From Rebecca billardiae RCC1528 (lineage: Eukaryota > Protista > Haptophyta), in the NCBI GenBank assembly GCA_965240325.2, contig OZ251246.1, positions 372,001 to 436,000 on the forward strand: DNA of 64,000 nt, read 5' to 3'. Below are positions 4,012 to 51,331 of this stretch, one piece after another (the first letter of the stretch is position 1; each line of letters opens with the position of its first letter). Under the pieces are notes generated by a model that made no database searches, was not told where the DNA came from, and saw nothing but the letters and a program-made list of their open reading frames with translations. Both the position numbers and the translations under genes were made by a program.

Positions 4012-4084
4012 CGAACCGCTTCGAGCCCCAGCCGCGCCGGAGCCCAGCTCGGAGTGCCAGGCACACAAATACCGCGCCGTGATC

Positions 4085-6286: not shown

Positions 6287-6734
6287 CGCGACCGCCGCCG
6301 TCCGTCACGACTACCGCGCAGCCCACATTGTCATGGATCCGTGATCGTCAGTCAGCCACACTCACGGTCTGTGGGGTCCTACGACGGAACATCATACCGC
6401 GCGTCTGCACCGTCGCATGGCATGCGCTAGAGCACTCAGTAGAGCAGCATGGAAGGTGTTCTCTTCCAACGGTCGGTCGGGAGCCGATGTTGGAGTGGAC
6501 CCCCAAATTGTGAGATTCAGAGGAGATTGCAATCCTATCCTTGAAATAATGGGCTAAAGCAAACTGTACAGTTTATTATGTTTTAACGTGCACACTTGGT
6601 TAAAGCGTGATATCAATATGATCATGGATTTTAAAGCGTGGACTACCCATGTTTTTTCGTCAATCGTTCATCGCTCGTCATCGGTGCACGCTCCCCGTGC
6701 CCATCGCGCACGACCGGCGAGCGAGCGCGGCGCG

Positions 6735-17610: not shown

Positions 17611-20610
17611 AGCGTTCCGCACACGTGCGTCCGCCCGGCCCGCGCCGGCAGCGGTGCCTCCACCGGATCCACACCAGCGTGATTATGTATGCGGGCCCGG
17701 AGGGCCCGTGTACCAAACCCGCGAGCGCGAATCACGATGGCGGCGCATACTGGTCCAAGGAGTTTGTCCGGAAATCGGCTGGCCTCGTTAGTTACAACTT
17801 CGACTTCTACTAGAAAAATGTCTACTTTCAGATACACGATTCGAATTATTCTTATTGGGCGCAAACGAAAACGATTGCCGGATTTGGGGGGCGAACCGGA
17901 CTCAACCGGCCTACGGTGAACCGCCAACCGTGATTTAGGTGGGTCCCTGGCGATTTTCCAGCGGTCTTTTAAACATTTACCGGGTTTTCTGGCCTGATTT
18001 CTTTTCGCGCGGGGCGCGGCTCGGGAAAATCGCCGGACCGCCGGCCGAGGTCGATCTGAACGCTCCCGACGATGTCGGAGCGCCTCTCCAGCGCGACCGA
18101 GCCGCCGTGTGTCGGGTAGCCCACAGCCAACACCTATCGCGCGCTCCAGCGCTTTGCGCGTGCTCACGGATGGGATCCGTGGTCACACATCCCCCGCCTG
18201 GCACGTGCCCGCATGTTTGACTCTCGCCCGGCTAGACGCGTACAGACAACTTGAATCGATCGGCGGGTGTTCGACCCGTGCCTTCGAGCAGGGTCAGTTT
18301 TTGCCACATGCGGGTCAGGCGACGGGAGGCATGGGTCAGTGTCGTGCACGGGCATGCTCTTGACGCTCCCGCCATCTTGAGCAGCTCAACGCACCGTGAA
18401 GGTGACATTTGGGCTGTGCGCAAGCTGCTCGTGAGAACGCACGACAGCCAGCCCCGGGCTCTCGGGGAGCCATGTAAGCGATTGGCGACTTCCGAGAGGG
18501 CGTGTTTGGTGGGGGTTGGTACCAATCATCGACCAGCAGGCCTAGGATGGGTGCACTGAGGACTTGGGATGCTGAGAAGCCGCCGCGATGTGCGGCGAGC
18601 ACGCCGACTTGCCATCCGTGTGCACGATCCAGCGCCAGGAAGATCAGCAGGGCCTTTGACAGCGGCAGCAGGCGCTCAGCGATCCTTCCCTATGCCGAGT
18701 GTGGGCATAGCCTGTGGTGCTCGAGGGTGGTCGCAGGATATGGGTCCATTCTTGACAGAACGCGGTCGCGTTGACAGGCGCGGGTGCCACCCCACGCTGT
18801 TGCTTCTGCCATTGGGTGGTCCCACTCGTTCCGCTTGTGGTCTGCGAAGACTCGTACTCAGCAACTCTACGGCTAGGCGTAGTAGACCCCTCAGACGCAT
18901 GTCTGATGATCGCCCGGCACGTTCTCGTCGTCACGTTGGGTGTACTTGAGCGAGCGGAAGCCGCAACGTGATGGCTAGGCCAGCAGCTCAACCATCTGAC
19001 GTCTCGCCGGCCAACTGGCTGAGTGCTCTCAGCCTAGCAGCAGCGTCGGTGAACCTATCGTATTGCTGCCTGGCGAGAAGATGGTAGGAGGCATCGTCGG
19101 CGGCATGGGCTGCAGCTGCGGTAGTCATGGACTGGTGGCGGCCTCACGCGGGTGGGCATACGACGACCGGTGACACGCGGAGTACGAGCACGGAAGCCGC
19201 CGAACGCGGCAAGCTCCGGCGGTGGCGTTGGCTGATAGTCCAGCCTCGACGGCGGAGGGCTCCCGTGTGACGACGGTGGCATGCTCGGTGGCGGGCGATG
19301 GTGTGTGCCTCGGCACGCAGCCCGCCACAAACACTGCCACTCGCAGGCAGTCCGGTTGCGGCCCGGGTTGCCAATGCCTGTGTCCGCGTCGCTCGGCGCC
19401 TATTCGATGACCCAACAAACGTACCCACATATCGGAACGAATTTGAATATATAGTGAAGCGCATCCACGGTCAATATAAAGTGGGTACCATACATACTAT
19501 ATACGGGTAAGTGGCTATATATGAAGTGGGTAATATGCTCGATCTTGCTGTAGTTTGTTGGAGGTATCAGCGCACAGCATAGAGCCCCACTCTTTGCTTC
19601 ATAAAATGGTTCGGTCGGGTGTCAACGGTTGTCAATAAGTAATTCCGATCGCATGTCGCCATCTAGCCACCATAACCATGAAGTGACGCTTCGCAAAATC
19701 TCTATGTGACACTACTGGCGCGGCGCGCGCGCGCTCGGCCGCGCGACGGCACGCGGAGTAGGTTTTGAGGTCGAAACTTTTGCTCCGCCCCGATGGGACG
19801 CATTTATGGCGTCGATTCTGGGTGAGAGACAAAATCTAGGACGTCATCCTGAGTGCGCCAGAATATCGCCCCAGTGGGGAGGGACCCACCTACCGGGGTG
19901 ATTCGTGAACTCGGTGAAGTCGCCAGCCTTGAGATGGCACCGCAGACCGCATTACGCGATTAATTCGAAGAGGCACCTGGAAGAGAAGCAATAAAATGCA
20001 TAGCTCGCGGCGGCCCTCCCGCTCGGCAGCTCTTTGTTTGAGAGCTGTTCATGAGTCGTGTCGCGAACGCGTCTGGAGCTTATTGCTCGCACGGGCCGCC
20101 GAGGGCTCCGCCGTGAGGCGCGCCACCCGGGCTGCTGTCTGTGCCTGTGGCCACGATGCCCGTCGGGGGGAGGCGCGTCCGCGGCGCAGTGCATGAGGCC
20201 GTCGCGCGCTTCTTGCCTCGCGCCAAGCTCTGATTGCGTCTCTCGCCCGCCGAGCTCGCCGCTAGCCGGCCGATGTCGTCACGATCCGCGGCATCAAACC
20301 AATCACCGCACACAGACCGCCAAGCCCGAAGCCGCGCGGTGACACAGTAAGTACGTGCGGAGTGAGCACAGAGCAGGCGCCTGAGCGCGACACGCGCGAA
20401 AGATGGTGCGGTCACGCCCCTGCACGACTGGTCGACCGCTTACTTGCCCGCTCGGCGCGTCTCAAGAACCCCTCGTGCGCGCGTTTCACGCGGCGGAGTG
20501 CAACGAACGAACAATCACGGACCTGCGGTCGCGAACGACGAGGCACAGTGCTCGAGCTGCGCGATAACACAGCGCGTGTGCACACTGTGACTGAGTGAGC
20601 AGACGCCTGA

Positions 20611-21956
20611 GGGTGAAAATCCCATTTTCTGGCCTGTCCGGGCGGAAAATCCGGCTGCTCAGATCTGACCGGACCGGGACCCGGACAGCACAGTAATCAG
20701 TATCTTAAGGGACCAGACACTTAATTACATCTTCGTTCTCTTCGGATTTGAGCATGGGGCGGCGCCCCATTTGCACAGTCAAAAGACCGCGGGTGTAAAA
20801 GCAACCGTTGTCGAGTTCGATGTAGCGGCTGGGCGAATTAGTGAATTAAAAAAACAATTCACGAGACACTTGCGCCCACGGCCGCGATGGCGTGCGCCGT
20901 CCACCCACGACGGAGTCGTGGACGGACATCGCTACACAGCCTACGCGACAGGCGTTGTCGTGATCGAGGTGCCCGTGCCCGTTGTCGATAGCCAAACGAT
21001 TGGCACGACGACCTGGCACCACATCCGCGTCAAAGCGTGGCGAGGCCGTGGTCCAGCGCGTGTGCGGCAAGCTGGCCGATGTGCGGACGGCGTCGCGTGG
21101 CGCAGGGGCTCCTGCCGATGCTACCTGGCGGCTGCTGCGGAGCCTGCTGCCGTGGTCGAGCCTGAGGCAGAGGGTGAGTCAACCGCGGAGCAGCTCAACG
21201 CTTCCGAGATCGAGCTGCGCGCGGTCGGACCAGATGACGGCCCGCGGCCTTCCAAGCGCACACGCAAGGACGCCTGAGCAGACGCGTTCAGTCCGAGCAA
21301 AGCCTGGTCGGCGTACGAGCGCGAGTCAGCTCAGACACGGCACGAGCGCACGCATGACGGCTCGTACGATGAGCTCGTCGGCTTGGTCACCGGGCTGCCG
21401 TCGCTCGTCGCTTCGCTTGTCACGTCACACTCAGCTGAGCAGAGACATCACTCCCGCCGTTCAGCTGATCGACGAGGACGAGGCGGCCAAGACGGCGGCG
21501 GCTCAAACGCCTGGAGGAGGAGCGCAGGAGGAGGAGGAGATCCCAACGCTGAGCCTGTGGGGCCGCGCCGAGGCCAGGCACCGCGGCCAGCGGCTGCAGT
21601 AGCGGGTGGCGGCCGGACAGCAGCTCGGTGGCACACGCTCAGGCTCATACGTCGATCCTCTTGCTCGAGAGTCGAGGCGGCGGGCAAGGTGCAGGCAGCA
21701 CGCGAGCTTGCTGAGCGCGCGCAGGCCGAGCCGCAGCTGAGCCCCGAGGGTGCTCGGGACGCCGCGTGCGCAAGCAGGCCGCCTCGCAGCAAATGGTGCT
21801 TCGCATAATAACTACGCTGATACATTACCCGGAAAAAATTTCGTCGCACTGCGTGCGCTTTCTTCTCTTTCTTATTTAATTCCATATTCGCGTATTAAAT
21901 GCCGCTTTTCCGCCTCCCCAGTGCAGAAGTGCGCCAGAAAATGGGAATTCCACCCC
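20611..21956 (+). mobile_element. PIF/Harbinger-like non-autonomous element family B, short (internally deleted) copy
   Basis: TIRs GGGTGAAAATCCCATTTTCTGGC / GCCAGAAAATGGGAATTCCACCCC, flanked by a 3-bp TSD TGA. Homologous to 31715-34626 in inverted orientation. Confidence 0.8.
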
Positions 21957-31714: not shown

Positions 31715-34626
31715 GGGGTGGAGTTCCCATTTTCGTCTGGCGCACTTCCGCACTGGGGAGGCGGAAAAGCGGCATTTAATACGCGAATAAGGAAAACTCT
31801 GCCCTGGCGGGCGGGGGGGTCGGCGGGCCGTGCCAGTGCTGTCGCAATGTATCCTCTGCGGGTTCGCGTCTTTCCACATTCTCTCGTGGCCGTGGGTGAC
31901 GGACAGTCGAGTGCAAGGACCAGTGACACGTGAAGTTGGCTCCCCTGAACGTGTACAAGAACAAGTCTCAGTCTGTACTCTAGTATGCGCATCAGCGAGG
32001 CCCACACCCACGAGGGAATGTGCAGCACGCGGGGCGGGACGCGGGGTAGCCCGTTGCTCCGCGCGAGCGCGGGTACGCGCTGTATGTGCCGCATCTCGAC
32101 CGCGATGGCGTAATCGAGCGCCGCGCCGCCGACGAAGCCGCCAGAGTAGATCATGTGCATGTCCTCCTGCCGCCAGCCGAGACGGAGAGCGGTCGCCGCG
32201 AGGATGCTTGCCGATGTCCGCTCCAGGCACGATGGGCTCGGCGCAGGTCGCGTTGACGTCGTACACGGCCGCCACGCTGAGCACGAGCGCGTTGACGTTC
32301 AAGCGGTCGTCGCTCTTCGCATCTTCGACAGGTCTGGCGCCCGCGTGCTCGGCGGCACGAGGAGCTGTTGGTTGTGCGCGCGCGCGCGCACAGCGACAGC
32401 GTGTGCCACTCGCGATCGAGAGTGGGCAAGCGCTGCTCACGCGAGCACACCAATCGCAGCGCATCCGTCACCGGCGTGACGACTTCCGCCTCGTCCCGCA
32501 GCGCCTGCGCCATGGACGAGGCCATGGCGCGGCGATGTTGCATGCTCGACGTTTCATCTGTCTGCGGATGGCATCACGGGCTTGTCTGTGTCGCGCTGCG
32601 GCGAGGGTCGCCAACTCGCGATGACGCGGTTGCTGCCACGGCGACAGACCCGGGAGGTGCGTCCGCTGCGCGTCGTACGCCGTTGGCGCTGCGCTTCCGT
32701 CGCATTGGTCACCGTCGACGCCATGCAGGGGCTGCCGGACGTGGGCTTCCGGGCTGAGGGACCGGACCGCGAGCAATGACTGAGTCCGGTGCGCGGATTC
32801 CGGCGATCGAGTTCAGAAGGCCGCGCCAAATCTTGCGTCGCGTGCGATGGCGCTTCCCGCCCGCGAGACGCCTCGTGATGAGGGCTTTCTCGCACCGAGC
32901 CCGACGCGCGACGGTGGATCGCGCGAGGCGGTCATCGTGCGCAGCGCATGATGCTACGGCCGGTGCGAGCTTTCGACGTGCACGTCGGGCGAGGATCGCC
33001 CCAGGTCTCACGATCGTGTCGACGCGCCGAGCGTACCGCTCCAAACGGGTCGATTTAGCCCCCGTTCGACCTGCACGCGAGACGACGAGGGCAGCAATCG
33101 CGAATCGGGCGAAAACCCCCCTCGGGAGTCCTCTCACGATGTCCGCGCCGGCGTTGGATTTGGCGCGCGCCGCCCACGCGCTCCGCGCCATGGGCGAACC
33201 ACTTTTCGGCCGAGCGTCCCCAGTGGGAGCTGCGAGGGCGCCCGGTAACTAGTGAGCGAAGCGATTTTCTTTTCTCTGCGAGGCGATTTTCCTTTTTCCT
33301 TTTCTTTTTCTTATCTTTTCCCCGGGCACTACAAGGGGCGGACCTACGGCCCGCCATAAAATAATAATGGGAATAAAGCGCACGCAGTGCGCAGAAATTT
33401 TTTTCGGGTAAGTAGTATCAGCGTAGTTACTATGCGAAGCACCATCTGCTGCGAGGCGGCCTGCTTGCGCACGCGGCGTCCCGAGCACCCTCGGGGCTCA
33501 GCTGCGGCTCGGCCTGCGCACGCTCAGCAAGCTCGCGTGCGGCCTGCACCTTGCCCGCCGCCTTGACTCTCGAGCAAGAGGATCGACGTAAGAGTGAGCG
33601 TGTCAGTGTGCCGCCGGCAGCTGCTGTCCGGCAGCCATCCGCGACTGCAGCCGCTGGCCGCGGTGCCTGGCCTCGGCGCGGCCCCACAGGCTCAGCGCTG
33701 GGAGCTCATCCTCCTCCTGCGCTCCTCCTCCAGGCGTTTGAGCCGCCGCCGCCTTGGCCGCCTCGTCCTCGTCGATCAGCTGAACGGCGGGAGTGATGTC
33801 TCTGCTCAGCTGAGTGTGACGTGACAAGCGAGGCGACGAGCGACAGCAGCCCGATGACCAAGCCGACGAGCTCATCGTACGAGCCGTCACGCGTGCGCTC
33901 GTGCCGTGTCTGAGCTGGCTCGCGCTCGTACGCCGACCAGGCTTTGCTCGGACTGAACGCGTGTGCTCAGGCGTCCTTGTGTGTGCGCTTGGACGGCCGC
34001 GGGCCGTCATCTGGTCCGACCGCGCGCAGCTCGATCTCGGACGCGTTGAGCTGCTCCGCGGTTGACTCACCCTCTGCCTCAGGTTCGACCACGGCAGCAG
34101 GCCCCGCAGCAGCCGCCAGGTAGCATCGGCAGGAGCCCCTGCGCCACCCGACGCCGTCCGCACATCGGCCAGCTTGCCGCACACGCGCTGGACCACGGCC
34201 TCGCCGAACTTGACGCGGATGTGGTGCCAGGTCGTCGTGGCAATCGTTTGGCTATCGACAACGGGCACGGGCACCTCGATCACGACAACGCCTGTCGCGT
34301 AGGCTGTGTAGCGATGTCCGTCCACGACTCCGTCGTGGGTGGACGGCGCACGCCATCGCGGCCGTGGGCGCAAGTGTCTCGTGAATTGTTTTTTTATTCA
34401 CTAATTCGCCCAGCCGCTACATCGAACTCGACAACGGTTGCTTTTACACCCGCGGTCTTTTGACTGTGCAAATGGGGCGCCGCCCCATGCTCAAATCCGA
34501 AGAGAACGAAGATGTAAAAGTGTCTGGTCCCTAGATACTGTGCTGTCCGGGTCTCGGTCCGGTCAGAGACAGATCTGAGCAGCCGGATTTTCCGCCCGGA
34601 CAGGCCAGAAAATGGGATTTTCACCC
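31715..34626 (-). mobile_element. PIF/Harbinger-like element family B, long copy (2.9 kb)
   Basis: GGGGTGGAGTTCCCATTTTC ... GAAAATGGGATTTTCACCC with 3-bp TSD AGA. Contains ~1.6 kb absent from the 20611 copy; ORFs decayed. Confidence 0.8.
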
Positions 34627-35100
34627 AGAGTCAGAGTGAGACTCACTGAGAGAGAGAGAGAGTCAAAAGTCAATAAAGCGGATATCGATCGTCGAGAAAG
34701 AGAGACGAGCTCGTCGATCGGCGGAACCAGTTTTCGACGAATTTAATAATCAGCTGCCCACAGTGTCACTGTCCGAGTCGGACAGGGTGACTCGGACAGC
34801 TCAGACGATATATATACTACTATATATACGTAGTATCGGATTCATCACTCTTCGGGCAAAAATCGTGAGAGCACTTGAGCAGACTGCAGAGTAGCAGTAT
34901 AGAGTCTACTGCTGTATTACGGTCTAGCGCAGATCAGTAGTTCAGTAATAAGTAGTAGTACTGCACGGACCGGAGGCCCCTGGGCCTGGACAGCACCGTG
35001 CGGCGTGAGTCATTCATTACTCAGCACTCAGTGATAGATGCATGCTGTGGGGGCACTGCACAGCCATCCGCGACACGACCGCCCTCCGCTGTAGGGGGGC

Positions 35101-35471
35101 TGACAAATCGGATGAAAACCCGTTTGCCGAGCGAGCTAAATCGGCTTGCGCAAGCCGATTTAGCTCGCTCGGCAAACGGGTTTTCATCCGATTTGTCATA
35201 ACCGAGGTCACCTGGGGACACCCCGCGAGGGGCTGTTGTCCGTCCCAGTCTACCGACTCCGGATTTGTTGACGAGGTTGTTCCTTCCCCGCCCGGTCTGT
35301 CCCGGGTGTCCGCCCTGCGTGCTCGTCTGCGCTGTGTGGCTTCGTAGAGGCTCCGGCTTCTGTGTGCGTGTGGGCGGTGAGCCCTTCTGCGGCTGTGGCT
35401 TCTTGAGGCTCGTTGTTGTAGCGTTGTTGTTGACCCGGGTGTGACTCGCCCGGGGGCTGCGCTTCTCGTGG
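35101..35471. repeat. Left 371-bp terminal inverted repeat, starting with a perfect 98-bp palindrome (35101-35198)
   Basis: Reverse complement of 41086-41456 with no mismatch seen; palindrome has 49-bp arms and no spacer. Confidence 0.95.
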
Positions 35472-35605
35472 AGCCGTGCTCGTCTTCTGTCGGCGGTGGG
35501 TCGTTGTCCGATTTCTGTTCGATTCTTCGTCGTCTCCGGCTCGTCTTCCTCCCCCCGGGCCGTAAGGCTCTCGCGGGGAGCCGGAGAGTGGGCAAGAACT
35601 TTTTG

Positions 35606-35631
35606 TGGCACGTCGGTAGTGGGATTCGAAC
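35606..35631 (+). promoter_or_regulatory. Primer-binding-site-like sequence complementary to a tRNA 3' end
   Basis: TGG-CA-CGTCGGTAGTGGGATTCGAAC; the reverse complement GTTCGAATCCCACTACCGACG reads as T-loop, T-stem, acceptor strand and G discriminator (Ser-like). Confidence 0.65.
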
Positions 35632-35689
35632 AGGCGACTTTAGTCCTGACAAATCGGATGAAAACCCGTTTGCCGCTTCACCCTTTGAC

Positions 35690-38600
35690 ATGGCGGAGCC
35701 GCCGGGTGGCGACATGCGTGACCAGCTCCCGCCGCGAGCTCTCGTCCTCAAGCCGCAGGACCTCCGCACGGCCATCTCCGTTCTTGTGGTCATGGTCACG
35801 TCGAAGCCGGACATGGACGTCGCGCTCGCGTTCTCCAACCCGTCCTCGCCCCTCGAGCCGGGCAAGGACGATACCGGCGCGGACAAGCCCATCGTCTGCC
35901 CCCCGTCCACCGCCGCCGCCACCATCCAGGCCAAGCAGCTGCGCACGCAGGCTTTCATCGTGCAGTTGCTTCTCAAGGCGGTCGCTCCTCGCATCCTCGA
36001 CCCGATCATCGCGCAGTTGCAGCACTCGGGTCTCGGGCTCGAGCTGTCTCATCTCGTCAACGCGCTCAACGTGCGCTGCAACAGCTCCCGCCCCTCCTCG
36101 CTCGTCGCCAAGCTGTACGCCCTGCTCTCGATCAAACTGTCGCCGAGCGAGAGCTTCCACGCCTTTGCTGCCCGCGTGATGTCCAACGCCACGGAGCTGC
36201 GCGGCGTCGAGATCAAGGACGACATCTTCACGCTCGTCGTGATCCTCGTGAACCTCTACGGCCGCAACCCGTCCTTCGTCAGCTCGGTGATCGCGACGAT
36301 GAACGACCAGCCCATCTCGGTGGAGGATCTCATCGAGCGCGTGCACGATCTCGACCGCGTCGCCGCCGCCGCCAACGGCACGAACCCCAACCGCCAGGCC
36401 GTCAACGCGCTCACCTCCAAGGGCCGGCCAGGCGCATCCATGCCTCCTACCCCGTGCAAGTACTGCGGCGGCATGCACTGGAACCGCGACTGCCCGAACC
36501 GCCCCCAGACGTCCACCTCGCGCTCCTCGGGCGCGACGCCCGCAGCCGACGCTCGCTCCGGCGGCGCGCGCCGCCCGACTCACAAGTCCAACAAGCTCCA
36601 GCGCGTGCCCTCCGCGCCCTCGCAGTCGCAGCCGCAGCCGACGCCGCAGCGGGCGAAGCCGTCGGCGACCACGACGCGCGTGCGGCTCATCCAGGACGGC
36701 ACGCCGACGCTCAACGCCATCTCCATCTCGGGCTCGGCGTCAGGCCCCAACTCGCAGCCGGCGGCGACCGACGCCGACGCGCCGCCGCCGCCGCCCGCCA
36801 ACTCGCAGCCGCCCGCCGACTCGCCGCTGTCGCGGGCGCGCTTCAACTCGCTGCCGACGCTCGTCCTCACGCCGTCGTCGCGGCAGCCCGCCGGCGCGCC
36901 GCCGCCGCCGCCGGCGCCCGCCAACTCGCCGCCGCCCGCCGACTCGCAGCTGTCGCGGGCGCACTCCAACTCGCAGCCGGCGCTCACCAACACGCCGCCG
37001 CTGCCGCCGCCCGCCGACTCGCAGCAGCCGGCGCTGTCGCTCATCGACCAGCAGCCGGCGCTCTACTCGCCGCCGCCGCCGCTGTTCGACCCGCCGACGC
37101 AGGCCAGCTCGCCGCCGCCGCCCTTCGGCCCGCCGTCGCCGCCGACGCAGGTCGACTCGCCGTCGCCGCCGGCGTCTGAGGCCGGCTCCCCGATCCAGCT
37201 CGCGACGGCGGCCGAGCTCGAGCGCGGCCAGAATGTGATCATCATGGCGTTGCGCCAGTCCATCCGCAAGCCCGCCTCCTACGAGCCGTTCCACCTCAAG
37301 CCGTTCCGTCTCGCCAACCCCCCGGACGACCGCGACGCCTCCGCCTCCGACTCGGCCTCGGAGACGGACGATGAGCTGCCGGACCTTGTCCCGTGCACTC
37401 CCTCGTCCACGACCTCGGCTTCGGACGCGGCCTCGGACACGTCCGACGACTGCCCCAGCCTGGACGACGTCTCCATCGCGGGCAACCACACCTACCCGCT
37501 CGGCCACCTCGGCCAGCTCGCCGGAGAGCCGCTCACGCTCAGCCCGTACGAGTTCCTCGCCGCAGCCGCCGCGGCCGAGGCCGAGATCCATCGCGCACGG
37601 TCTTTCGGTGACGCCGGCGCCTACATCGATGACCTGATCGTCCGGTACGAGCCGCCGCCGCCGCGGTTCAAGCACGAGGGTCGGCTCCGCGCGCTCTTCA
37701 AGTCCTCGCACGGTGCCTTCCTCTTCCTCGTCGCGCTCGCCGTCCTCGCCATCATCTCGATCCTCACCGCGGTCACCTGCTGCGCCCGCACCGGCCCGCC
37801 CATCATCTGCGGCGTCTCCCGCTCGTTTGACCCGATCAACCCGACCTGCATCCAGCAGCCGTTGCTCGCCGATCCGGAGGAGATTGAGAACGTGCACTCG
37901 ACGATCTCCTTCGCCATCGGCACGCCGTTCACAGGCGACATCGCCCAGGCGAGCATCTCGATCATGATCGACACCGGCGCGGACACCACCATCGCCTCGA
38001 CCGCGTTCTCTCGGTTTGCCGCCAAGTCCTTCCGCCAGTTCTCGGAGGCGCGCGCGGCGAACGGCACGCGGATCAAGATCAACACCTCGGCCTCGTTCGC
38101 CCTCGGCATGCGCTCGATCGACGGCGACCTCATCACGCTGCCGCTCATGGACGTCCCGCTCTCTCCAGACGTCCCGGGCTTCTACATGAGCGACACTTGG
38201 CTGACCCGCCTCGGCATCTCGTTCATCTCGCTCGCGGCGCCGACCACCTTCATGTCCGGCGCCACCCCGATCCACGCGCAGGGCGGCCGGTACCTGCTGT
38301 ACGGCGACAAGCTCGTTCCTCTGCACGGCCGCGATCTCGCATGCGCCGTCTTCATCCCGGACGACGACTCGCCGTCGCCCACCATCGCCGCGTCCGGCCT
38401 CCACGTGCCGCCCGCCCCGCTCCAGTCCTCGCTGCCGCCGCCGCCGGCGCAGCCGCCCACGTCCGACGGCGCTCTCGTCATCGTGACCATGGACCAGGCC
38501 TCGCAGACCGCCGACCTCGCGCCGGACGACGACACGTTCTGCGACGAGTGCTGCGTCGAGTTCAAGGACACCGACGAGCTCTCGCGCGTCGCTCACCTCC

Positions 38601-41600
38601 GGCTCGGCCACGCTCACGCAGCTGCCGTCAACCGCACGCTCGCCGCATCCAAGCACCTCGGCGCGCGCAACCTCAAGTCGGACTGCTCGTGCGCGCTCGC
38701 CAAGATGAAGCGCAACTCGTTCACGTCCACGTCGCCCCGCTCGGAGAAGGCGTTCGTGCTCGTCCATGTCGACGTCGCCGGCTACGTCGACGGCAAGTTC
38801 ATCGTGAACCCGGACGATTTTGCCAAGTTCTACGTGATCGTGTTTGTCGACGACTACACCCGGGCCGGCTTCATCTACTTCCTCGACCGCCGCTCGGACG
38901 CACCGGAGGCGATGCGACGCTTCATCGACGACATGTCGGTCTACGGCCACACCGTCAGCCGCTTCCGCGTCGACGGCGCCCCCGAGCTCAACTCGACCGA
39001 CTGGGAGGGCATCTGCCGCGCCCACGGCATCGCCCCCAACCAGGTCACGCCGCCCGACACGCCGCAGCACAACCCGATCGCCGAGCGCTTCATCCAGACG
39101 CTCTTCAACGCGGCGCGCTCGATCCTGTTCCACTCCAAGCTGCGCATCGACGCCTACGCCAAGGACGCGCTGCGCCACGCCGCGTACATCATCCGCCGCA
39201 TCGCCACGCCGGTGACGTTCGACAAGACGCCGTTCGAGCTGCTGCGCGGCTTCCCGCCAGATCTCGCTCAGCTGCGTGTCTTCGGCTGCGTCGCCTACGT
39301 CGTGCCGCCGAACACGCACTTCAAGAAGCTCGACCCGCGCGCCGTCATGGGCGTCTACGTCGGCCACGGCGACGACGGCCACATGGTGAACGTCCCGCCC
39401 AAGAACCGCACGCGCTACACGAAGGCGATCATCGTACGCGTGCCCGGCGACGGCCAGATCGTCCCGGACATGTTCATCATCTCGCACCACGTGCGCTTCG
39501 ACGAGGACACGCTCTACGTCGACCACCCCGACGCCGCTCACATCGCGCGCGACCCGCTCGCCGCCGCGCCGCAGCTGCCGCCGACGTCGCCGCCGCTCGA
39601 CCTCCATGCTGCCGATGTGGGTAATGGGGGAAGTTCCCACGGCGCCGTCCGGCGCCGCGATGGCGCTGGCGCATTCGGACACGCTGAGCGGGTGGGGGAC
39701 GCACCGCACGCCTACGTCGGAGACGCTGACGACGACGCCGCCGGCGCCGAGGACTCCCTCGATGTCGGCAACGCGCTCAACGACGACGACCCGCCCTCAT
39801 CTCGCACGCGCGCGCGCGCACACGTCAACTCGGTCGCGTCGCCGACTTACTCCAAGCTGCCGCGCATCTACGCGCTCCTGCTCGCCATCGGACTCTCGGA
39901 CACGCCGACGGCGGTGCAAGCACTCAACGGCCCGCATGCGACGCAGTTCGCCGCCGCTCTCGACGCCGAGTACGCCTCCATCCTGGCCAACGACACGTGG
40001 GTGGAGGTGCCGCGCAAGCCGGGGATGCGCACGCTGAAGGCGGCGCCCGTGTTCAACATCAAGCGCGACAAGAAGGGCAACATCAAGCGGTTCAAGGCCC
40101 GCGTCGTGGGCAAGGGCTTCACGCAGATCGAGGGCATCGACTACGACGAGACCTTCTCCTCGGTCGTCCGCTACGAGACCCTCAAGATGATCATCGCCAT
40201 CGCCGCGGCCAAGCAGCGCCGCCTCTTCCACGGCGACTTCACGACGGCGTACCTCAACGCGCCGATCGACTACGAGATCTACCTCGAGCTGCCGCTCGGG
40301 TACAAGCCGAAGAAGAAGGGCGACGTCGTGCTGCGCCTCCTCAAGAGCCTCTACGGTCTCAAGCAGTCCGGCCGCAACTGGCGTCTCATGATCGACGACT
40401 GGATGAAGGAGTACGGGTTCGCGCAGAGCCAGGCCGACCCGTGCCTCTATGTCCTCAACACGCAGTCGGGCATCATCGCCGTGTGCATCTACGTGGACGA
40501 CATGCTCATCCTCGACGACAGCGACGACCCGACCGCCTGCGACCACTTCATCTCGAAGATCACATCCTCGTACAAGATGACCATCACGGCCGACATCGAC
40601 GGCTACCTGTCGGCCACGCTCACGCGCTCCAAGGACGGCATCATGGTGACCGTCACCAAGAACATCCTCGAGCTCCTCGAGAAGACGGGCTTCATGAACT
40701 GCAACACGTCCGACACGCCGATGACCGAGGGCCTCAAGCTCGGCCCGTGCTCCGAGTCAGACGCGCTCGACGCGGAGACGACGACGTTCTTCCGCTCCGT
40801 GGTCGGCTCGCTCATCCACATCACGCAGTTTCGCCCGGACATCGCCTACGCCGTCGGCACGCTCACCCACTTCATGTCCAAGCCGGGCAAGAAGCACCTC
40901 GAGGCTGCCAAGCGCGTCATCCGCTACCTCGCCGGCACGCCGAACCACGGCCTCTTCTTCCGCTCGGGCTCGGACGTCACGCTCGTCGCGTACGTGGACG
41001 CCGACTACGCCAACGACCTCCACGACGAGCGCAAGTCTGTCACCGGCTACGTGATGCACCTCTGCGGCTCGACGGTGAGCGGCCGCCACGAGAAGCGCAG
41101 CCCCCGGGCGAGTCACACCCGGGTCAACAACAACGCTACAACAACGAGCCTCAAGAAGCCACAGCCGCAGAAGGGCTCACCGCCCACACGCACACAGAAG
41201 CCGGAGCCTCTACGAAGCCACACAGCGCAGACGAGCACGCAGGGCGGACACCCGGGACAGACCGGGCGGGGAAGGAACAACCTCGTCAACAAATCCGGAG
41301 TCGGTAGACTGGGACGGACAACAGCCCCTCGCGGGGTGTCCCCAGGTGACCTCGGTTATGACAAATCGGATGAAAACCCGTTTGCCGAGCGAGCTAAATC
41401 GGCTTGCGCAAGCCGATTTAGCTCGCTCGGCAAACGGGTTTTCATCCGATTTGTCAGGGGCCAAACCGCCCATTTAAAAATGAAAAGCAAAGTCGCGTCG
41501 CATTTTCGCTCCGCCCTCGGCCTTTTAGGGTGGCGCGGAGCCTTTTTCTCGGACCTCGCTCGAAAATCGAGCTCCGACGCCTTCGGGCGCTCAGAGCTCG

Positions 41601-41659
41601 GTTCCGCTCCAGCACGAGCGGCCGGAGGCAGTGGACCGCCGCGCGCTCGCGACCTTTGA
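35690..41659 (+). CDS. Copia Gag-Pol polyprotein, RNase H truncated at ~41085 and read through into the inverted repeat
   Basis: Zn knuckle CKYCGGMHWNRDC (36455); protease IDTGA (~37968); integrase HLRLGH, HVDVAG, FVDDYTR, VDGAPE, HNPIAER; RT KARVVGKGFTQ..GIDY, LYGLKQSGRNW, YVDD (40490); RNase H start YVDADYA..RKSVTG. Confidence 0.92.
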   Translation: MAEPPGGDMRDQLPPRALVLKPQDLRTAISVLVVMVTSKPDMDVALAFSNPSSPLEPGKDDTGADKPIVCPPSTAAATIQAKQLRTQAFIVQLLLKAVAPRILDPIIAQLQHSGLGLELSHLVNALNVRCNSSRPSSLVAKLYALLSIKLSPSESFHAFAARVMSNATELRGVEIKDDIFTLVVILVNLYGRNPSFVSSVIATMNDQPISVEDLIERVHDLDRVAAAANGTNPNRQAVNALTSKGRPGASMPPTPCKYCGGMHWNRDCPNRPQTSTSRSSGATPAADARSGGARRPTHKSNKLQRVPSAPSQSQPQPTPQRAKPSATTTRVRLIQDGTPTLNAISISGSASGPNSQPAATDADAPPPPPANSQPPADSPLSRARFNSLPTLVLTPSSRQPAGAPPPPPAPANSPPPADSQLSRAHSNSQPALTNTPPLPPPADSQQPALSLIDQQPALYSPPPPLFDPPTQASSPPPPFGPPSPPTQVDSPSPPASEAGSPIQLATAAELERGQNVIIMALRQSIRKPASYEPFHLKPFRLANPPDDRDASASDSASETDDELPDLVPCTPSSTTSASDAASDTSDDCPSLDDVSIAGNHTYPLGHLGQLAGEPLTLSPYEFLAAAAAAEAEIHRARSFGDAGAYIDDLIVRYEPPPPRFKHEGRLRALFKSSHGAFLFLVALAVLAIISILTAVTCCARTGPPIICGVSRSFDPINPTCIQQPLLADPEEIENVHSTISFAIGTPFTGDIAQASISIMIDTGADTTIASTAFSRFAAKSFRQFSEARAANGTRIKINTSASFALGMRSIDGDLITLPLMDVPLSPDVPGFYMSDTWLTRLGISFISLAAPTTFMSGATPIHAQGGRYLLYGDKLVPLHGRDLACAVFIPDDDSPSPTIAASGLHVPPAPLQSSLPPPPAQPPTSDGALVIVTMDQASQTADLAPDDDTFCDECCVEFKDTDELSRVAHLRLGHAHAAAVNRTLAASKHLGARNLKSDCSCALAKMKRNSFTSTSPRSEKAFVLVHVDVAGYVDGKFIVNPDDFAKFYVIVFVDDYTRAGFIYFLDRRSDAPEAMRRFIDDMSVYGHTVSRFRVDGAPELNSTDWEGICRAHGIAPNQVTPPDTPQHNPIAERFIQTLFNAARSILFHSKLRIDAYAKDALRHAAYIIRRIATPVTFDKTPFELLRGFPPDLAQLRVFGCVAYVVPPNTHFKKLDPRAVMGVYVGHGDDGHMVNVPPKNRTRYTKAIIVRVPGDGQIVPDMFIISHHVRFDEDTLYVDHPDAAHIARDPLAAAPQLPPTSPPLDLHAADVGNGGSSHGAVRRRDGAGAFGHAERVGDAPHAYVGDADDDAAGAEDSLDVGNALNDDDPPSSRTRARAHVNSVASPTYSKLPRIYALLLAIGLSDTPTAVQALNGPHATQFAAALDAEYASILANDTWVEVPRKPGMRTLKAAPVFNIKRDKKGNIKRFKARVVGKGFTQIEGIDYDETFSSVVRYETLKMIIAIAAAKQRRLFHGDFTTAYLNAPIDYEIYLELPLGYKPKKKGDVVLRLLKSLYGLKQSGRNWRLMIDDWMKEYGFAQSQADPCLYVLNTQSGIIAVCIYVDDMLILDDSDDPTACDHFISKITSSYKMTITADIDGYLSATLTRSKDGIMVTVTKNILELLEKTGFMNCNTSDTPMTEGLKLGPCSESDALDAETTTFFRSVVGSLIHITQFRPDIAYAVGTLTHFMSKPGKKHLEAAKRVIRYLAGTPNHGLFFRSGSDVTLVAYVDADYANDLHDERKSVTGYVMHLCGSTVSGRHEKRSPRASHTRVNNNATTTSLKKPQPQKGSPPTRTQKPEPLRSHTAQTSTQGGHPGQTGRGRNNLVNKSGVGRLGRTTAPRGVSPGDLGYDKSDENPFAERAKSACASRFSSLGKRVFIRFVRGQTAHLKMKSKVASHFRSALGLLGWRGAFFSDLARKSSSDAFGRSELGSAPARAAGGSGPPRARDL
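41086..41456. repeat. Right 371-bp terminal inverted repeat, ending with the perfect 98-bp palindrome (41359-41456)
   Basis: Reverse complement of 35101-35471. Confidence 0.95.
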
Positions 41660-43198
41660 GACGCCGAGATGGTCTCGGGTGCGCGCGCGCGTGACGCTGG
41701 TGGGCGCTACTGACCCGTGCCTTTGCGCCACCAGCGGCTCACCACCCGCTTCTTGGCCACCTCGCGCCGTGCGCGGCGCGCGTCGGCCGGCTTGAATTGG
41801 TGCGCTGCGTACGCCCGCTACGCTACCGCACGGTGTGGCGCATGATCAACTCGGACCAATGAGATCGATGCTCGGACCAATCGTCCATGTATGTCTGTGA
41901 ATGCCCAGCTCGCCTAACCTGCCCTACTGCGCCGGAATCGCCGTCAGCAGACCGGCGCGAGCTCGCGCACAGCACCTCCGCGGAGCTCGCAACTGTCATG
42001 TTCCGCTTGTAGGGCCCGTGTTTGCACCTGCCGTGGCACTTGCGATGGTCAGTACGTTGGGTATGGGTCACGTGTGCCCTCTGATGGCGTCTGGGCGCCT
42101 CCCATTCGCCTCTCAGGACGTCGCGGACGTGCTCGCAGGCAGCGGTTGGCTCATTCGACAGGTCCGACGTGCACTCGACCGTGCCTGCAAGCGCGCCCCT
42201 GTGACGCTCATGCCTGCAGAAGCAGATGCAGATGGGCCCTCATGCACCCTGGTGCGCCCAAGACCGGCGGGAGCGTCAGAGACCGTCTCAATCTTGACAC
42301 CTTGCACACGCCGGCGCTTGCCGTTGGGCTCCGCGCAGCCGGCCAGGAGCGCCGAACAACGCCGGATCAGCCTCTGTAGGCCGAATATCCGCCCCTAAGC
42401 CCAGAAATAGCGCGGAACAGGGTAGTGCGTACCTATGTGGACCAATCCCATCCAGCCTGGTTTGGTGCAGACACGCCAGCCACCGCCTGGAGCAGACGTT
42501 TGCTGCCGAATCGCATGCTCGGCACTGTGCCGCACTGCGACGACGACAGATTTGACCTGCCTCGTAGGTCTCGGCCAGGGAGCGGTGACGGTTGGCTCGA
42601 GTGACTTTAAACCGTGACTATGACCGAGAGCACTCCCGGGCTGAGGACGTGGGGCCGGTGCTTTGGGTCTAATATGTCTGCAATACGCCGTACGCGTGGC
42701 CGTATACACAGTCTGAAAACGTATCTCGCAGCTCGAGATCAGATGAGGCTGTATTCATCAGCATGGCGCCTATATACACAGTGGGTATGTAACGATCGGT
42801 GGCTTCTAGGAAACTACATATTTGACAGCCTGCCAGTACACAGCCTATATCGCATGTTGGGACCTGCTGCTGCTGGGGACTCAGAACGATCTCGCTGAGA
42901 TGCTCTAACAAAGTGAGGTCGACATGGTCTATATGTCACATATAGGACGACCGTTACATGTCGTTTCCAATAAGTTCAGGCTCATTCTAATAAGTAAATA
43001 TGCTAGCCGTTACGCCCTATATTCAGGGTATGTGCACCTGATTTTTTTACATGGCCGGCCCAGACCCCTCCAGAGGGCAAATGATCCAGCCCGAAATCAG
43101 CTCTAAACACTCGCTAGGACCCGCGCTCGTGGCCGTCAGTAACGCTACAGTGCCACTTTGGCCCCCCTATGACCGCTGCCACGATTGCCCAACGAAGC

Positions 43199-47508: not shown

Positions 47509-47631
47509 GGCCCGTGCTCCGCCAGCCGCCATCGTGTTCGGCTTGGAGTGGTGCGGCCGCCTGTGCGCGCTGCGGTCGGCCTGCTGGTCGCGTACTCGCG
47601 TCCGTCACGAAAGCGCTTGGTCGACGCGCAC

Positions 47632-48858
47632 ATGGCGCCCACCGGCACGGCGGCCGCCTCGCTTGCCCTGCTGTTTTGTGCAGCGGGGGCGTCGCCCGCT
47701 CTCAGCGCCACTGCCGGCGAGCCCGCGCCGGCCCTCGTCGGGCTCGTCACAGGGGCAAGTTCCGGCATCGGGTTCGAGACCGCCGCACAGCTCGCGGCGT
47801 CAGGCAGATACGAACGCGTGATCCTCGCGTGCCGCACCGTCGCCAAGGCCGCCTCCGCGCGCACCAAGCTCGTCGAGCGCGCGGCTCGGCTCTCTGGCCG
47901 GGGCGTCAACGCGAGCGTGTTCGAGCTGCTCGAGGTCGACCTCTCGAGCATCGAGTCTTCGAGGCGTGCTGGCGCGCAGCTCGCGGCGCGCTCAATCGGT
48001 GGTGCTGGCCGCCACGATCGTATCCATGGCCGTCGCCGCATTGACACCTTGATTCTGAACGCGGGCGTGGCGACGGCCTCGCTCGAGCGCTCGGTAGACG
48101 GACTTGAGCTCGACCTCGCCGTGAGCGTCGTGGGCCACCACGTCCTCACGACAGAGCTCCTGGGTGCCGGCGCGCTCTCGCCTCGGGCGCGCATTGTGAT
48201 CGCCGCCAGCGACGTGGCTCGAGACGTGTTCGTGCCAAGCGCGCCGAGCGCCGAGCGCGAGGGCTCGGCGCGTGCGCGTGCGCGTGCGCGGTCGGGCCGG
48301 CACGACATGGACAGCTTCTACCGCGGCGCCACGGCCGCCGCGGCCGGCAGCCTCGCCAAGGCGCTGGAGCTCATTGCGCGCGGCGAGTACCCACGTGAGT
48401 ACGATGCCTATTCGGCGTATGCGAACGCCAAGGCTTGGGCGGTGTGGTGGGCGCAAGCGCTCGCGCGGCGCGTCCCGCCCGACACGGCGGTTTTGGCTGT
48501 CTCGCCCGGCGCGGTCGGCGGGACGGACATCGGCCGCGCCGTGATGCCCAAGAGCGTGCGCAAGGGCCTCATGTCGCTGGCGCGCTTCGGGCCGATGATC
48601 GGCCTGGGAACGGTCGAGCAAGCAGCGCGCCGATACCTTGACGCCGTGCGCTTTGCCGACGCCAGCCGGCACGTGTCCGGCACCTTCTGGGCGAGCCCGG
48701 CAGGCCGATACTCGGGCAAGCTCACGGAAGTGACGGAGGCGCGCGCGAGCCCGCGCTACTCTGAGTCTGTCTGGCAAGTGCTCACGACGAGACTGACAGA
48801 GCCGGTGCTGCTTGCAACGAGCACGACTCAGCAGTCAGCTGGTTCGGCGGGGGCCTGA
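47632..48858 (+). CDS. Short-chain dehydrogenase/reductase (RDH/WWOX/POR-like) with N-terminal signal or anchor
   Basis: LVTGASSGIG, ILACR, VDLSS, LILNAGV, GHHVLT, catalytic YANAK, AVSPG. Confidence 0.85.
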   Translation: MAPTGTAAASLALLFCAAGASPALSATAGEPAPALVGLVTGASSGIGFETAAQLAASGRYERVILACRTVAKAASARTKLVERAARLSGRGVNASVFELLEVDLSSIESSRRAGAQLAARSIGGAGRHDRIHGRRRIDTLILNAGVATASLERSVDGLELDLAVSVVGHHVLTTELLGAGALSPRARIVIAASDVARDVFVPSAPSAEREGSARARARARSGRHDMDSFYRGATAAAAGSLAKALELIARGEYPREYDAYSAYANAKAWAVWWAQALARRVPPDTAVLAVSPGAVGGTDIGRAVMPKSVRKGLMSLARFGPMIGLGTVEQAARRYLDAVRFADASRHVSGTFWASPAGRYSGKLTEVTEARASPRYSESVWQVLTTRLTEPVLLATSTTQQSAGSAGA

Positions 48859-49468
48859 AAGTGGCGGCTGGCGCGCGTATGTGACACTGCGCGCGACGCT
48901 GGCAGCGACGACGAGTGACGGCGTCAGACTACTTATATATACCGCAATATAATGCCATAGTCATACGCCGCCGTCAGTACTCGCCTACTCGGCGACTGTA
49001 GTACGACGTACTCGGTCACTACTCGGTTCTCATGCAAGGTTGGCCACGAAGTCTGTTACGCCTTACGGAGTGAGTGAGTTACGGGCCGCCGTGATGCAGC
49101 CACCGTGACGCGTGCTCCTGTTGACAATGAGACCGACCATCAACTATCAAGTACCAACCGTCGTCGTGATCCCTACAGAGCCGAGGCGCGAGCGATGCCA
49201 AGTCGCAGCGGGGTGCCGCACGCGTCACGTGACGTGACACGTACGTGACACGTCGCGTGTGCGGGTGGAGTCCTCACTTATTCCTCAATAAATCCTCTAA
49301 TCCTCAGCTCAAGAACTGGGTCCGGAGGAGCCTTGATCCGGAACCGCTTCAATCTCCACTGACGACCGCTCGCCGAGCGCCTCGCCCGGGTGCGGAGCCG
49401 GTGAGCAGCGTGTGCGCCGTGTCGCCGTCCCTCATCCGCTGGCACAGCCGCACGGTCGTCTCAGCTCG

Positions 49469-51331
49469 ATGCATCCGAGCGCCGCGGAGGCGCTGCTCAC
49501 CGAGGCAGACGCTCGGGCGTCGAAGCTCCGTCACACGCGGCTCGACCCCAAGGCGGTGGAGACGCTCCTCGCCGCGCTGCGCGCCCGGCGTCCGGACACG
49601 GAGGCGAGGATCGCGGCGCTCGTCCCGTTCTGCGTCGAAGGGGGCGGCGGCAAAGTAGACGTGGCCACGGAGGCGATCATCCGATCGCAGGCTCTGCCGA
49701 AGCTGGTGCAGCTCCTCGCGCCTGCGCGCACCGCTGAGGTTCAGCTGGCTGCGATGACAGCCATCTTTGCTCTGGAGGATGCCGACGATGGTACTGTGAT
49801 GGATGCACTGATCGAGTGCGGCGTCGTCCGGCCGCTGCAATCGCTGCTGGGCTCGGCCGAGGAGTGCGTGCAAGCCCGGGCAGCAAATCTGCTCGGCTTG
49901 ATTTCCGTCTACTATGAAGAAGCTGACGTCGCAGAGGCGCGCGCCAGCATGCCGCAGATCATCCCGCTGCTGCGCTCTGCAAGCGAGATGGTGCAAGGTG
50001 ATGCAGCACATGCCATGGGCTACTTCGCTATGACGCCCAGGCTGCTGCGCGAGAGCACTCTGGACGATGCCATCCCGCCGCTCGTGTCGGTGCTGGGGGC
50101 TGACGACGCGCGCGCGCAGCTTGGGGCAGCCGGTGCCATAAGCTCACTCGCTTGCATCTCGCGGCGCCACACGGCATTGATGGACGAGGGCCTCTGCGAG
50201 CGCATGGTGCAGCTGCTGCTGGCCACGTGGGAGGGCTCTGGCCATACCCGTCTGCGGTCCGAAGCAGCGGGCCATGCTGCTGTAGCGCTGCGACGCATCT
50301 TCGAGAATAGCGCCAAGCATCGCGCATCCATTGCGCGCACGCCTGGCCTTGTCGGCGCGCTGATGCGCATTCGGCACAGCTCTAAGGAGAAGGTGGGGCG
50401 CGATGCTGTATCGAAGGTGGAGAAATTGCTCGACGTCCTGCTGCGCTGCGACCACAAGGACGTGCCCCGCCTTCTGCTCGCCTCAGCAGGCGAGTCACTC
50501 GCACAGCTCGCTCACAGCGAGGCCGAGCTGCGCGGTGCGCATGCGCGGCTGCATGCCAAGCTGAGCGCTCTGGCCGATGCGGTGGGCGAGCCCACGCGGC
50601 AGCACGACGTGGTGCTGCGGTGCGCGGACGGCACCGAGCTTGGCGCGAGCCGGCTGCTGCTCGCGCGGCACTCCGAGTACTACGAGGCGCAGCTGGGCGG
50701 CGGGCTGGCGGAGGGCAGCCAGCGCGAGGTCCGGGCCGACCCGGACTTCTCCGGCACGGTGCACGAGGCGCTGCTGCGCCAGCTGCACTCGGCGGGGGAG
50801 GTGCCGCTGCCGGCCGAGCCGTCGGTGCTGCTCGAGCTGCTGCGGCTGGCGAGGAAGCTGCAGCCGCCAACGCCGCCAGCAGCTGCGGGCTCGGAGAATG
50901 CGCCTGCCGCGCAAGCTGAGGGCAATGTGCTGGCGGGCGTGGCGCGTCGGTGCGAGGACGCGCTGCTGGCTGCTCTGGACGTGGACAACTGCCTCGACCT
51001 GCTGCGGCACGCCAAGGCGGCGGGCGGGTGCGCTCGGCTGGTAGAGGGCGTGCGCGCGCTGGCGAAGCAGCAGATCAAGGTGATCGTGAAGCAGGAGCGC
51101 TGGGCAGCGTACGTCCGCGACGACCCGGTCGAGGCGTGTGCGCTGATGCAGGCGCTTGCCGTCGATTTGGCCGACGACTACGAGCGCGCGTCCAAGCGAC
51201 AGCGCGTGCAGGATCAGGACGATGACGAGGACGACGACGACGGCGACTCCTCAGTCGGCTCAGACTCAAAGTCTGAGGCAGACGACTCCTCGGTGGCGGA
51301 CGATTCTGAGTTAGCAGACAATGCTGAGTGA
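49469..51331 (+). CDS. Armadillo-repeat + BTB/POZ-domain protein (ARIA/ABAP1-like architecture)
   Basis: ARM repeats (ALPKLVQLL, GVVRPLQSLL, AIPPLVSVL); BTB HDVVLRCADGTELGASRLLLARHSEYYEAQLGGGLAEG; LDVDNC; acidic tail with KRQR. Confidence 0.8.
   Translation: MHPSAAEALLTEADARASKLRHTRLDPKAVETLLAALRARRPDTEARIAALVPFCVEGGGGKVDVATEAIIRSQALPKLVQLLAPARTAEVQLAAMTAIFALEDADDGTVMDALIECGVVRPLQSLLGSAEECVQARAANLLGLISVYYEEADVAEARASMPQIIPLLRSASEMVQGDAAHAMGYFAMTPRLLRESTLDDAIPPLVSVLGADDARAQLGAAGAISSLACISRRHTALMDEGLCERMVQLLLATWEGSGHTRLRSEAAGHAAVALRRIFENSAKHRASIARTPGLVGALMRIRHSSKEKVGRDAVSKVEKLLDVLLRCDHKDVPRLLLASAGESLAQLAHSEAELRGAHARLHAKLSALADAVGEPTRQHDVVLRCADGTELGASRLLLARHSEYYEAQLGGGLAEGSQREVRADPDFSGTVHEALLRQLHSAGEVPLPAEPSVLLELLRLARKLQPPTPPAAAGSENAPAAQAEGNVLAGVARRCEDALLAALDVDNCLDLLRHAKAAGGCARLVEGVRALAKQQIKVIVKQERWAAYVRDDPVEACALMQALAVDLADDYERASKRQRVQDQDDDEDDDDGDSSVGSDSKSEADDSSVADDSELADNAE

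Follow-up and report, generated by a model that had tools for sequence, protein, structure and literature searches.

Reverse-transcription errors that reach the genome as complex insertions have been described for Copia and Gypsy elements (Sabot and Schulman, 2007, PMC1950507). The known complexes are head-to-tail fusions with three direct long terminal repeats (LTRs), attributed to a switch between two packaged RNAs, and template-switch Copia complexes with a 5-bp target-site duplication are already on record (PMC1950507). It has also been reported that the Ty1 integrase inserts any fragment ending in TG...CA and generates a 5-bp duplication in doing so (PMC2939329). Here we analyze a Copia-type element located at positions 35101-41456 of a 64,000-nt stretch of DNA (hereafter, the window) from the haptophyte Rebecca billardiae RCC1528 (assembly GCA_965240325.2, contig OZ251246.1, positions 372,001-436,000 of the forward strand). 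The element is bounded by perfect 371-bp inverted repeats in place of direct LTRs. In our estimate, the odds are about even (a probability of roughly 0.5) that it represents one defective copy of an otherwise ordinary Ty1/Copia family, which arose from a single-round error of reverse transcription and was then normally integrated. It looks like a rare but explicable defective insertion, a one-off replication accident rather than a new kind of element.

The left arm (35101-35471) and the right arm (41086-41456) are reverse-complementary over 371 of 371 nt (100%), as established by the repeat finder, by blastn against the window, and by a script; nothing comparable was observed in shuffled sequence. 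The repeat finder reports the coordinates 35100-35471 and 41086-41457 (372 nt), the outermost pair being formed by one flank base, so the arms of the element proper are 371 nt long. The element begins with TGACA and ends with TGTCA, and the exact inverted ends with TG...CA termini that were described in the initial annotation are therefore confirmed. The left arm, in the plus orientation, begins with TGACA and comprises nt 1-371 of the native 5' LTR; it is the native copy and continues unbroken through 35472-35690 into gag. The right arm is the same LTR segment, nt 1-371, in the minus orientation, and it stands where the remainder of RNase H, the 3' untranslated region (UTR), the polypurine tract, and the 3' LTR are expected. 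The last bases of this arm, GATTTGTCA, agree with none of the three candidate 5' LTR ends; this rules it out as a native 3' LTR, and the right arm was rejected as the native orientation on the same grounds. The only long terminal repeat of the element is inverted, and the two direct LTRs characteristic of Ty1/Copia were not found. The 98-nt tip also scores as a direct repeat, although only owing to its being a palindrome. A single abnormal join (41086-41097) explains the entire structure.

The sequence GGGGC is found on both sides of the element, at 35096-35100 on the left and 41457-41461 on the right (both read directly), and it is present in a single copy in an uninterrupted paralogue of the target, TAGGGGGGCCAAACCGC, at 9044-9060 in the window. 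The right flank (41462-42932) matches 9053-10559 at 90.6%. The empty site contains GGGGGG followed by CC, whereas the filled site has six G and one C on the left and four G and CC on the right; the GGGGC repeat is therefore a true 5-bp duplication, which together with the TG...CA termini is typical of Ty1/Copia. The target was the left terminal inverted repeat of a DNA element of ~1.7 kb ("family A"), which starts at 35088 and has its body and right terminal inverted repeat at 41457-43169, the partner repeat itself being located at 43153-43169. The empty-site paralogue thus bears out the GGGGC duplication in this visible target, as it was initially annotated. Together with the exact ends and the duplication, it also supports the further proposal that the inverted-end molecule went in as a single unit through the action of a DDE integrase. 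The insertion was also said to be recent, which is probably so, judging from the identical arms and the intact frame of 1798 codons. The ~1.7-kb DNA element (35088-35100 plus 41457-43169) is non-autonomous and has terminal inverted repeats TAGGGGGGCCAAA; the Copia insertion point lies 13 nt inside its left repeat. Its paralogue extends from 9044 to about 11960, and the two copies are 90.6% alike. On the left, the insertion has as its neighbor a 1.3-kb repeat (33356-34626), which recurs in inverted orientation at 20611-21880 with 94.5% identity.

The interior of the element is occupied by a plus-strand frame (35690-41097) for Gag, protease, integrase, reverse transcriptase (RT), and a part of RNase H, as determined from Pfam matches, motif coordinates, and translation. 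From the gag ATG at 35690, this one frame is open through the CCHC, DTG, HHCC/DDE, and YVDD motifs, and all 1798 codons are intact. Pfam matches on it include RVT_2 (4.9e-51), SH3_retrovirus (1.7e-11), and rve (2.7e-06). All on the plus strand, the frame holds the Gag CCHC knuckle (36455-36493), the protease DTG motif (37961-37990), the integrase zinc finger with the D, D, and E residues (38594-39091), the SH3-like domain (39248-39412), RVT_2 (39992-40726) with YVDD at 40487-40507, and the N-terminal part of RNase H (40988-41097), which has its first aspartate motif at 40988-41017. The integrase upstream of RT gives the Copia order (protease, integrase, RT, RNase H), and the RT is of the Copia type (RVT_2). 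Pfam scans of the main frame and of eight other open reading frames (ORFs) detected neither a tyrosine recombinase nor any further family. The C-terminal part of Gag contains proline-rich tandem repeats with a 123-nt unit (36747-37190, plus strand, repeat finder); the first two copies are 85% alike, and the repeats contribute to the greater length of the internal region compared with the relatives.

The RNase H domain is cut at the join. In an alignment to eight Copia polyproteins and the closest relatives, its homology runs to ...RKSVTGYVMHLCGSTVSG and stops there; the homologues continue beyond this point with the ...S(S/T)TEAEY..., ...DNQ..., and ...AD..TK... blocks. Beyond the aligned lysine there are 116 residues in P0250, the closest relative, and about 120 in other Copia proteins, so the element lacks about 116-120 codons along with the 3' UTR, polypurine tract, and entire 3' LTR. 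About the first third of the domain is kept, and three of the four catalytic positions are removed by the right arm. There is no purine run before the right arm, and the element has neither a complete RNase H nor a polypurine tract. The uninterrupted Gag-protease-integrase-RT frame of the initial annotation is an open frame indeed, to which we add that RNase H is cut by the right arm. The pol frame remains open through the entire inverted arm and 200 nt of the flank (41098-41659), with the stop at 41659, only because the sequence is GC-rich; a transcript of this copy would encode a 190-residue tail without homology.

The closest relatives of the element are P0250 (61%, L002), P0111 (60%, L001), P0251 (55%, L003), and P0101 (50%). 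L001 (JGI Ga0400656_006191) and L002 (Logan SRR23617239_287031) are both elements from uncultured metagenomes; their RT-RNase H proteins are 60-61% identical to that of the studied element, and their RT DNA is 72% identical. The first of them is complete; its direct LTRs (225 nt, TGTCAC...GTATCA) lie at about 141-364 and 4962-5180, and its duplication is CAGAG; its polypurine tract, GGGCGGGGG, is located before the 3' LTR, and its primer site, TGGTGGACC, directly follows the 5' LTR and overlaps an ATG. The second has a full RNase H and a pol stop, followed by the polypurine tract GGGAGGGGG, an LTR starting with TGTCAT, and then TGGTGGACC. L002 is a circularly permuted short-read contig, the ends of which (1-22 and 5444-5465) overlap by 22 nt; such a permutation is what the collapse of two LTRs in a short-read assembly would produce. 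Going by these relatives, the lineage is conventional: L001 has direct LTRs and a duplication, and both L001 and L002 possess a G-rich polypurine tract as well as a TGG primer site. LTR homology between the element and L001 is not significant except for one 12-mer: the L001 LTR (310-325) holds CACGAGAAGCGC in the forward orientation, the same 12-mer as at 41087-41098 of the window, at the start of the right arm. This coincidence is probably due to chance (4 of 200 shuffles score as well).

No further copy of the family was detected in the window, where blastn of the element found only itself, and the terminal 22-mer gave 0 matches in metagenome and viral contigs. Protein searches with the integrase-RT and RT-RNase H regions, and of a library of 50% representatives, yielded a best match of 61% and no same-family copy. 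In degenerate-pattern scans of metagenome, viral, and genome contigs, the outcome was either relatives at 31-44% identity or no match. The exact ORF product, when looked up, had no recorded counterpart. The host RCC1 ORF, too, has its best relative at only 45% in the collections searched; the host genome is therefore absent from them, and these empty searches are uninformative on copy number.

At the join, bases 41086-41097 (plus strand) can be read both as inverted LTR (nt 371-360) and as part of the RNase H frame (H-E-K), according to the codon alignment. The window codons there are CGC CAC GAG AAG CGC, in register with the relatives, and the start of the arm at 41086, as defined by identity to the left LTR, is the last base of the CGC codon. 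The corresponding codons are CAC CGC GAG AAG CAA in L002 and CGT CGC GAG AAG CAG in L003, and in the three nearest relatives (H/R)REKQ follows right after ...ISA. Because the relatives have CGC GAG AAG CA at that codon position, the join can be ascribed to a microhomology of 7-12 nt: the unseen parent probably shared 7-12 nt (CGAGAAGC; at least GAGAAGC) between the RNase H and LTR sites. In L003, a 1-nt frameshift is found directly after the REKQ codons (about 1500).

Starting from the observed anatomy, duplication, and truncation of the element and from the normal architecture of its relatives, we infer which template was used and in what order the steps took place, as follows. The native part would comprise the 5' LTR (35101 to about 35690), gag, protease, integrase, RT, and the initial third of RNase H. 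The growing plus strand would leave its minus-strand template at about 41086-41097 and re-anneal via the 7-12 nt of CGAGAAGC to a plus-sense single-stranded LTR at nt 360-371. The simplest template would be free plus-strand strong-stop DNA; any other plus strand with its primer at the polypurine tract would have the same 5' end. The growing strand would copy this template to its 5' end, U3 nt 1, which is set by polypurine-tract cleavage, and run off. The product would be a cDNA that carries the U3 tip at each end, the two in inverted orientation (5'-TGACA...TGTCA-3'), both duplex ends being ...TGTCA-3'. The integrase would then join both U3 ends to one target with a 5-bp stagger, and host repair would trim any branches. 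Insertion of such a U3-U3 cDNA would be possible because a Copia-type integrase needs little beyond TG...CA ends.

An arm that ends exactly at nt 1 is expected from run-off on a template with U3 nt 1 at its 5' end, and the 371/371 identity of the arms and the intact 1798-codon frame are as expected from one recent cycle. Because LTR nt 1 is exactly where the arm ends, next to the correct duplication, the inverted-end molecule should predate integration. Lacking an intact RNase H, a polypurine tract, and an R-containing 3' LTR, the copy could not be recopied by the normal route ("dead on arrival"). Minus-strand strong-stop DNA consists of R and U5 only, while the 5' end of plus-strand strong-stop DNA is U3 nt 1. 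A captured aberrant cDNA was among the alternatives initially offered, with minus-strand strong-stop DNA as its right end; our data favor the aberrant cDNA and not that choice of end. Plus-strand strong-stop DNA fits better, because the right arm complements LTR nt 1-371 from the U3 tip, and minus-strand strong-stop DNA contains no U3.

The full 5' LTR probably extends over 35101-35690 (plus strand), the right boundary being placed by analogy with the relatives (alternatives, 35594 and 35651). No second LTR is present that would fix the boundary. At the presumed end, the element reads ...TTTGACA and then TGGCGGAGCC, with the gag ATG spanning the boundary, much as L001 reads ..GTATCA and then TGGTGGACC; L002 is similar. 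There are two candidate primer sites, TGGCGGAGCC at 35691 and a tRNA-like TGGCAC... at 35606. The putative primer-binding site at the first of them, TGGCGGAGCCGCC (35691-35703, plus strand), occupies the position of TGGTGGACC in L001 and L002. The second, read directly, is a plus-strand stretch that is similar to the complement of a tRNA 3' end (TGG...GGATTCGAAC, 35606-35631) and is possibly a relic or an alternative primer site; the whole segment, TGGCACGTCGGTAGTGGGATTCGAAC, resembles such a complement as far as the T loop, apart from two additional bases. Neither ARAGORN nor Rfam tRNA called a tRNA in the LTR region, and Rfam on the LTR gave only sub-threshold microRNA hairpin matches to the palindrome, which are generic for any perfect hairpin.

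This palindrome, of 49 + 49 nt, is perfect and starts at LTR nt 1 (35101-35198, and also 41359-41456; repeat finder and script); it dominates the predicted RNA fold. The heptamer AAATCGG occurs in six copies in 35101-35690, four of them within the palindrome, and in 13 copies in the window versus about 4 expected, and this clustering in the one copy available suggests a built-in feature of U3. No terminal palindrome is present in the LTRs of L001 and L002. A model in which the LTR starts at 35194 (TGTCAT, like in the relatives) and the outer 93 nt were added was set aside as the principal model: there is no polypurine tract before 35194, and the 20-nt center of the palindrome has no source elsewhere. 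The terminal 29-mer has five exact copies (0 expected). The internal third copy, TGACAAATCGG...GCCG (35647-35675, plus strand), pairs perfectly with 35170-35198, and the segments 35170-35214 and 35631-35675 constitute a 45-nt inverted repeat (29 nt perfect, 87% overall) that closes the 5' leader in the predicted RNA fold.

Several points weigh against a template-switch origin. The 98-nt terminal palindrome and the repeated 29-mer are left unexplained by it, and the microhomology is deduced from relatives at 55-61% protein identity. With a single copy available, there is no direct view of the RNase H and 3' LTR of the parent or of the actual LTR boundaries. Finally, sequence alone cannot separate a template switch by RT from end-joining by the host. 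The latter is the core of a possible, if rather unlikely, alternative, in which the intasome pairs the U3 ends of two cDNAs into one target and their inner ends are then joined by microhomology-mediated end-joining, one of them resected to the middle of RNase H and the other to LTR nt 371. In vitro, concerted integration is routinely observed as a reaction that pairs two separate donor ends, and the outcome would include the same duplication, two U3 tips, identical arms, and a microhomology of 7-12 nt. However, this route requires two cDNAs in one complex, a chromosome that is broken until repair, and a heavy loss from one of the molecules (all but 371 nt), and no sequence feature favors it over the template switch.

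Judged from the assembled sequence, an assembly artefact, i.e., a chimeric 41085/41086 join or chimeric arms, is improbable. Perfect identity of the repeats and a short word shared at the join could look like a mis-join; yet a fold-back chimera would be symmetric about the join, whereas the source of the arm is 5.6 kb distant. At the right end, the proper flank follows with its 5-bp duplication, which could be faked only with a true insertion in the opposite orientation at the same site, and 12 shared bases are too few for k-mer collapse.

We regard as highly unlikely a normal insertion that was later rearranged in the chromosome, either by a fold-back replication switch or by an inversion and a deletion. 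Replication-based rearrangements, too, typically leave microhomology at the inner join, but a fold-back that passed nt 1 would continue into the reverse complement of the left flank (GCCCCCC...), and the actual sequence, GGGGCCAAACC, is the proper right flank with the duplication. The fold-back would thus need a second switch exactly at the LTR tip, and an inversion with a deletion would need two precise breakpoints. Two nearby insertions in opposite orientations followed by a deletion were rejected, as both flanks are contiguous in the empty-site paralogue; so was autointegration, which would join the LTR tip, and not nt 371, to an internal site and yield a circle.

Equally hard to credit is a genuine Copia lineage that has inverted terminal repeats as its normal architecture, the other origin that the initial annotation had offered. 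The clean ends, the identical arms, and the intact region from gag to RT are compatible with such a lineage, and the internal copy of 29-45 nt of terminal sequence (35631-35675) loosely recalls the internal complementary region of DIRS elements. Nonetheless, RNase H is cut in mid-domain, at a microhomology, with three of the four catalytic positions gone and with no polypurine tract or 3' LTR beyond; the frame reads on through the arm and meets no stop until 41659, in the flank; and the nearest relatives are conventional, L001 having direct LTRs and both it and L002 having a polypurine tract and primer site. Moreover, there is neither a tyrosine recombinase nor any other extra domain, and no route is known for copying such a transcript. 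The slimmest chance of all is given to the inverted 371-bp ends being a working architecture, a Copia-derived unit with two U3 tips moved between sites by the integrase, in which case the element would be a living intermediate between LTR retrotransposons and Ginger-like DNA transposons with terminal inverted repeats and an integrase gene, and its palindromic tips and 29-mer would be parts of end recognition or priming.

If the template-switch origin is true, the locus is a natural record of a Copia-type integrase carrying concerted insertion to completion on a molecule whose two ends share one U3 tip, and reverse-transcription errors beyond head-to-tail fusions reach the genome; both phenomena are otherwise known mainly from bench systems. 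The known picture of Copia replication is unchanged by this finding. For annotation, it is of value that tools seeking direct LTRs will overlook such copies or assign them to the wrong class. With its arms on either side of 5.6 kb, the perfect 371-bp inverted repeat could also give rise to hairpin RNA and to local instability.

Elsewhere in the window, two long ORFs on the minus strand (12169-13566 and 16236-18164) contain 8-10 EsV-1-7 cysteine-rich motifs (Pfam 2.4e-120 and 2.7e-137, respectively). Host-type ORFs in 2107-8519 and 47548-51328 include GT47 exostosin-like, RCC1 repeat, short-chain dehydrogenase, and ARM plus BTB proteins.

Among known systems with inverted ends, DIRS elements (e.g., DIRS-1, PMC7192593) share with the studied element inverted terminal repeats and an internal stretch that repeats terminal sequence. 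They rely on a tyrosine recombinase and make no such duplication, whereas the element has a DDE integrase, a 5-bp duplication, and a Copia-type RT. DIRS identity was therefore rejected, with no recombinase in the Pfam scans, and the comparison with DIRS that had been drawn at first fails on both counts, recombinase and duplication. Ginger DNA transposons (PMC2836005) are similar in having terminal inverted repeats, retrotransposon-like tips, an integrase-family gene, and a short duplication. They differ in that they lack gag and RT, encode a transposase related to Gypsy-type integrases, and move by cut and paste (PMC2836005), whereas the element carries the Gag CCHC knuckle, the protease, and RVT_2 in frame. 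No sign of excision was found in the element.

Self-priming is known from the Tf1/sushi group of Gypsy-type elements. A likeness to it is seen in the perfect complementarity of 35170-35198, near the presumed transcript start, to 35647-35675, upstream of gag. This resemblance is qualified by the candidate TGG primer site that the element also has and by the tRNA-type sites of its relatives.

With Ty1/Copia (Pseudoviridae-type) elements, the studied copy shares the order Gag, protease, integrase, RT, and RNase H, the RVT_2 domain, the TG...CA ends, and the 5-bp duplication; it deviates from them in having no 3' LTR or polypurine tract, a partial RNase H, and an inverted right end. Template-switch complex Copia and Gypsy insertions (Sabot and Schulman, 2007, PMC1950507) are likewise abnormal products of a single round with identical outer repeats, and they, too, were inserted by the integrase as one unit with a 5-bp duplication. 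The duplication and near-identical outer repeats by which such complexes are recognized are both present here, whereas the internal third LTR between direct cores is not, the element having one core. In contrast to the switch behind those complexes, the one proposed here would have been made onto the plus-sense LTR strand, giving an inverted, truncated arm.

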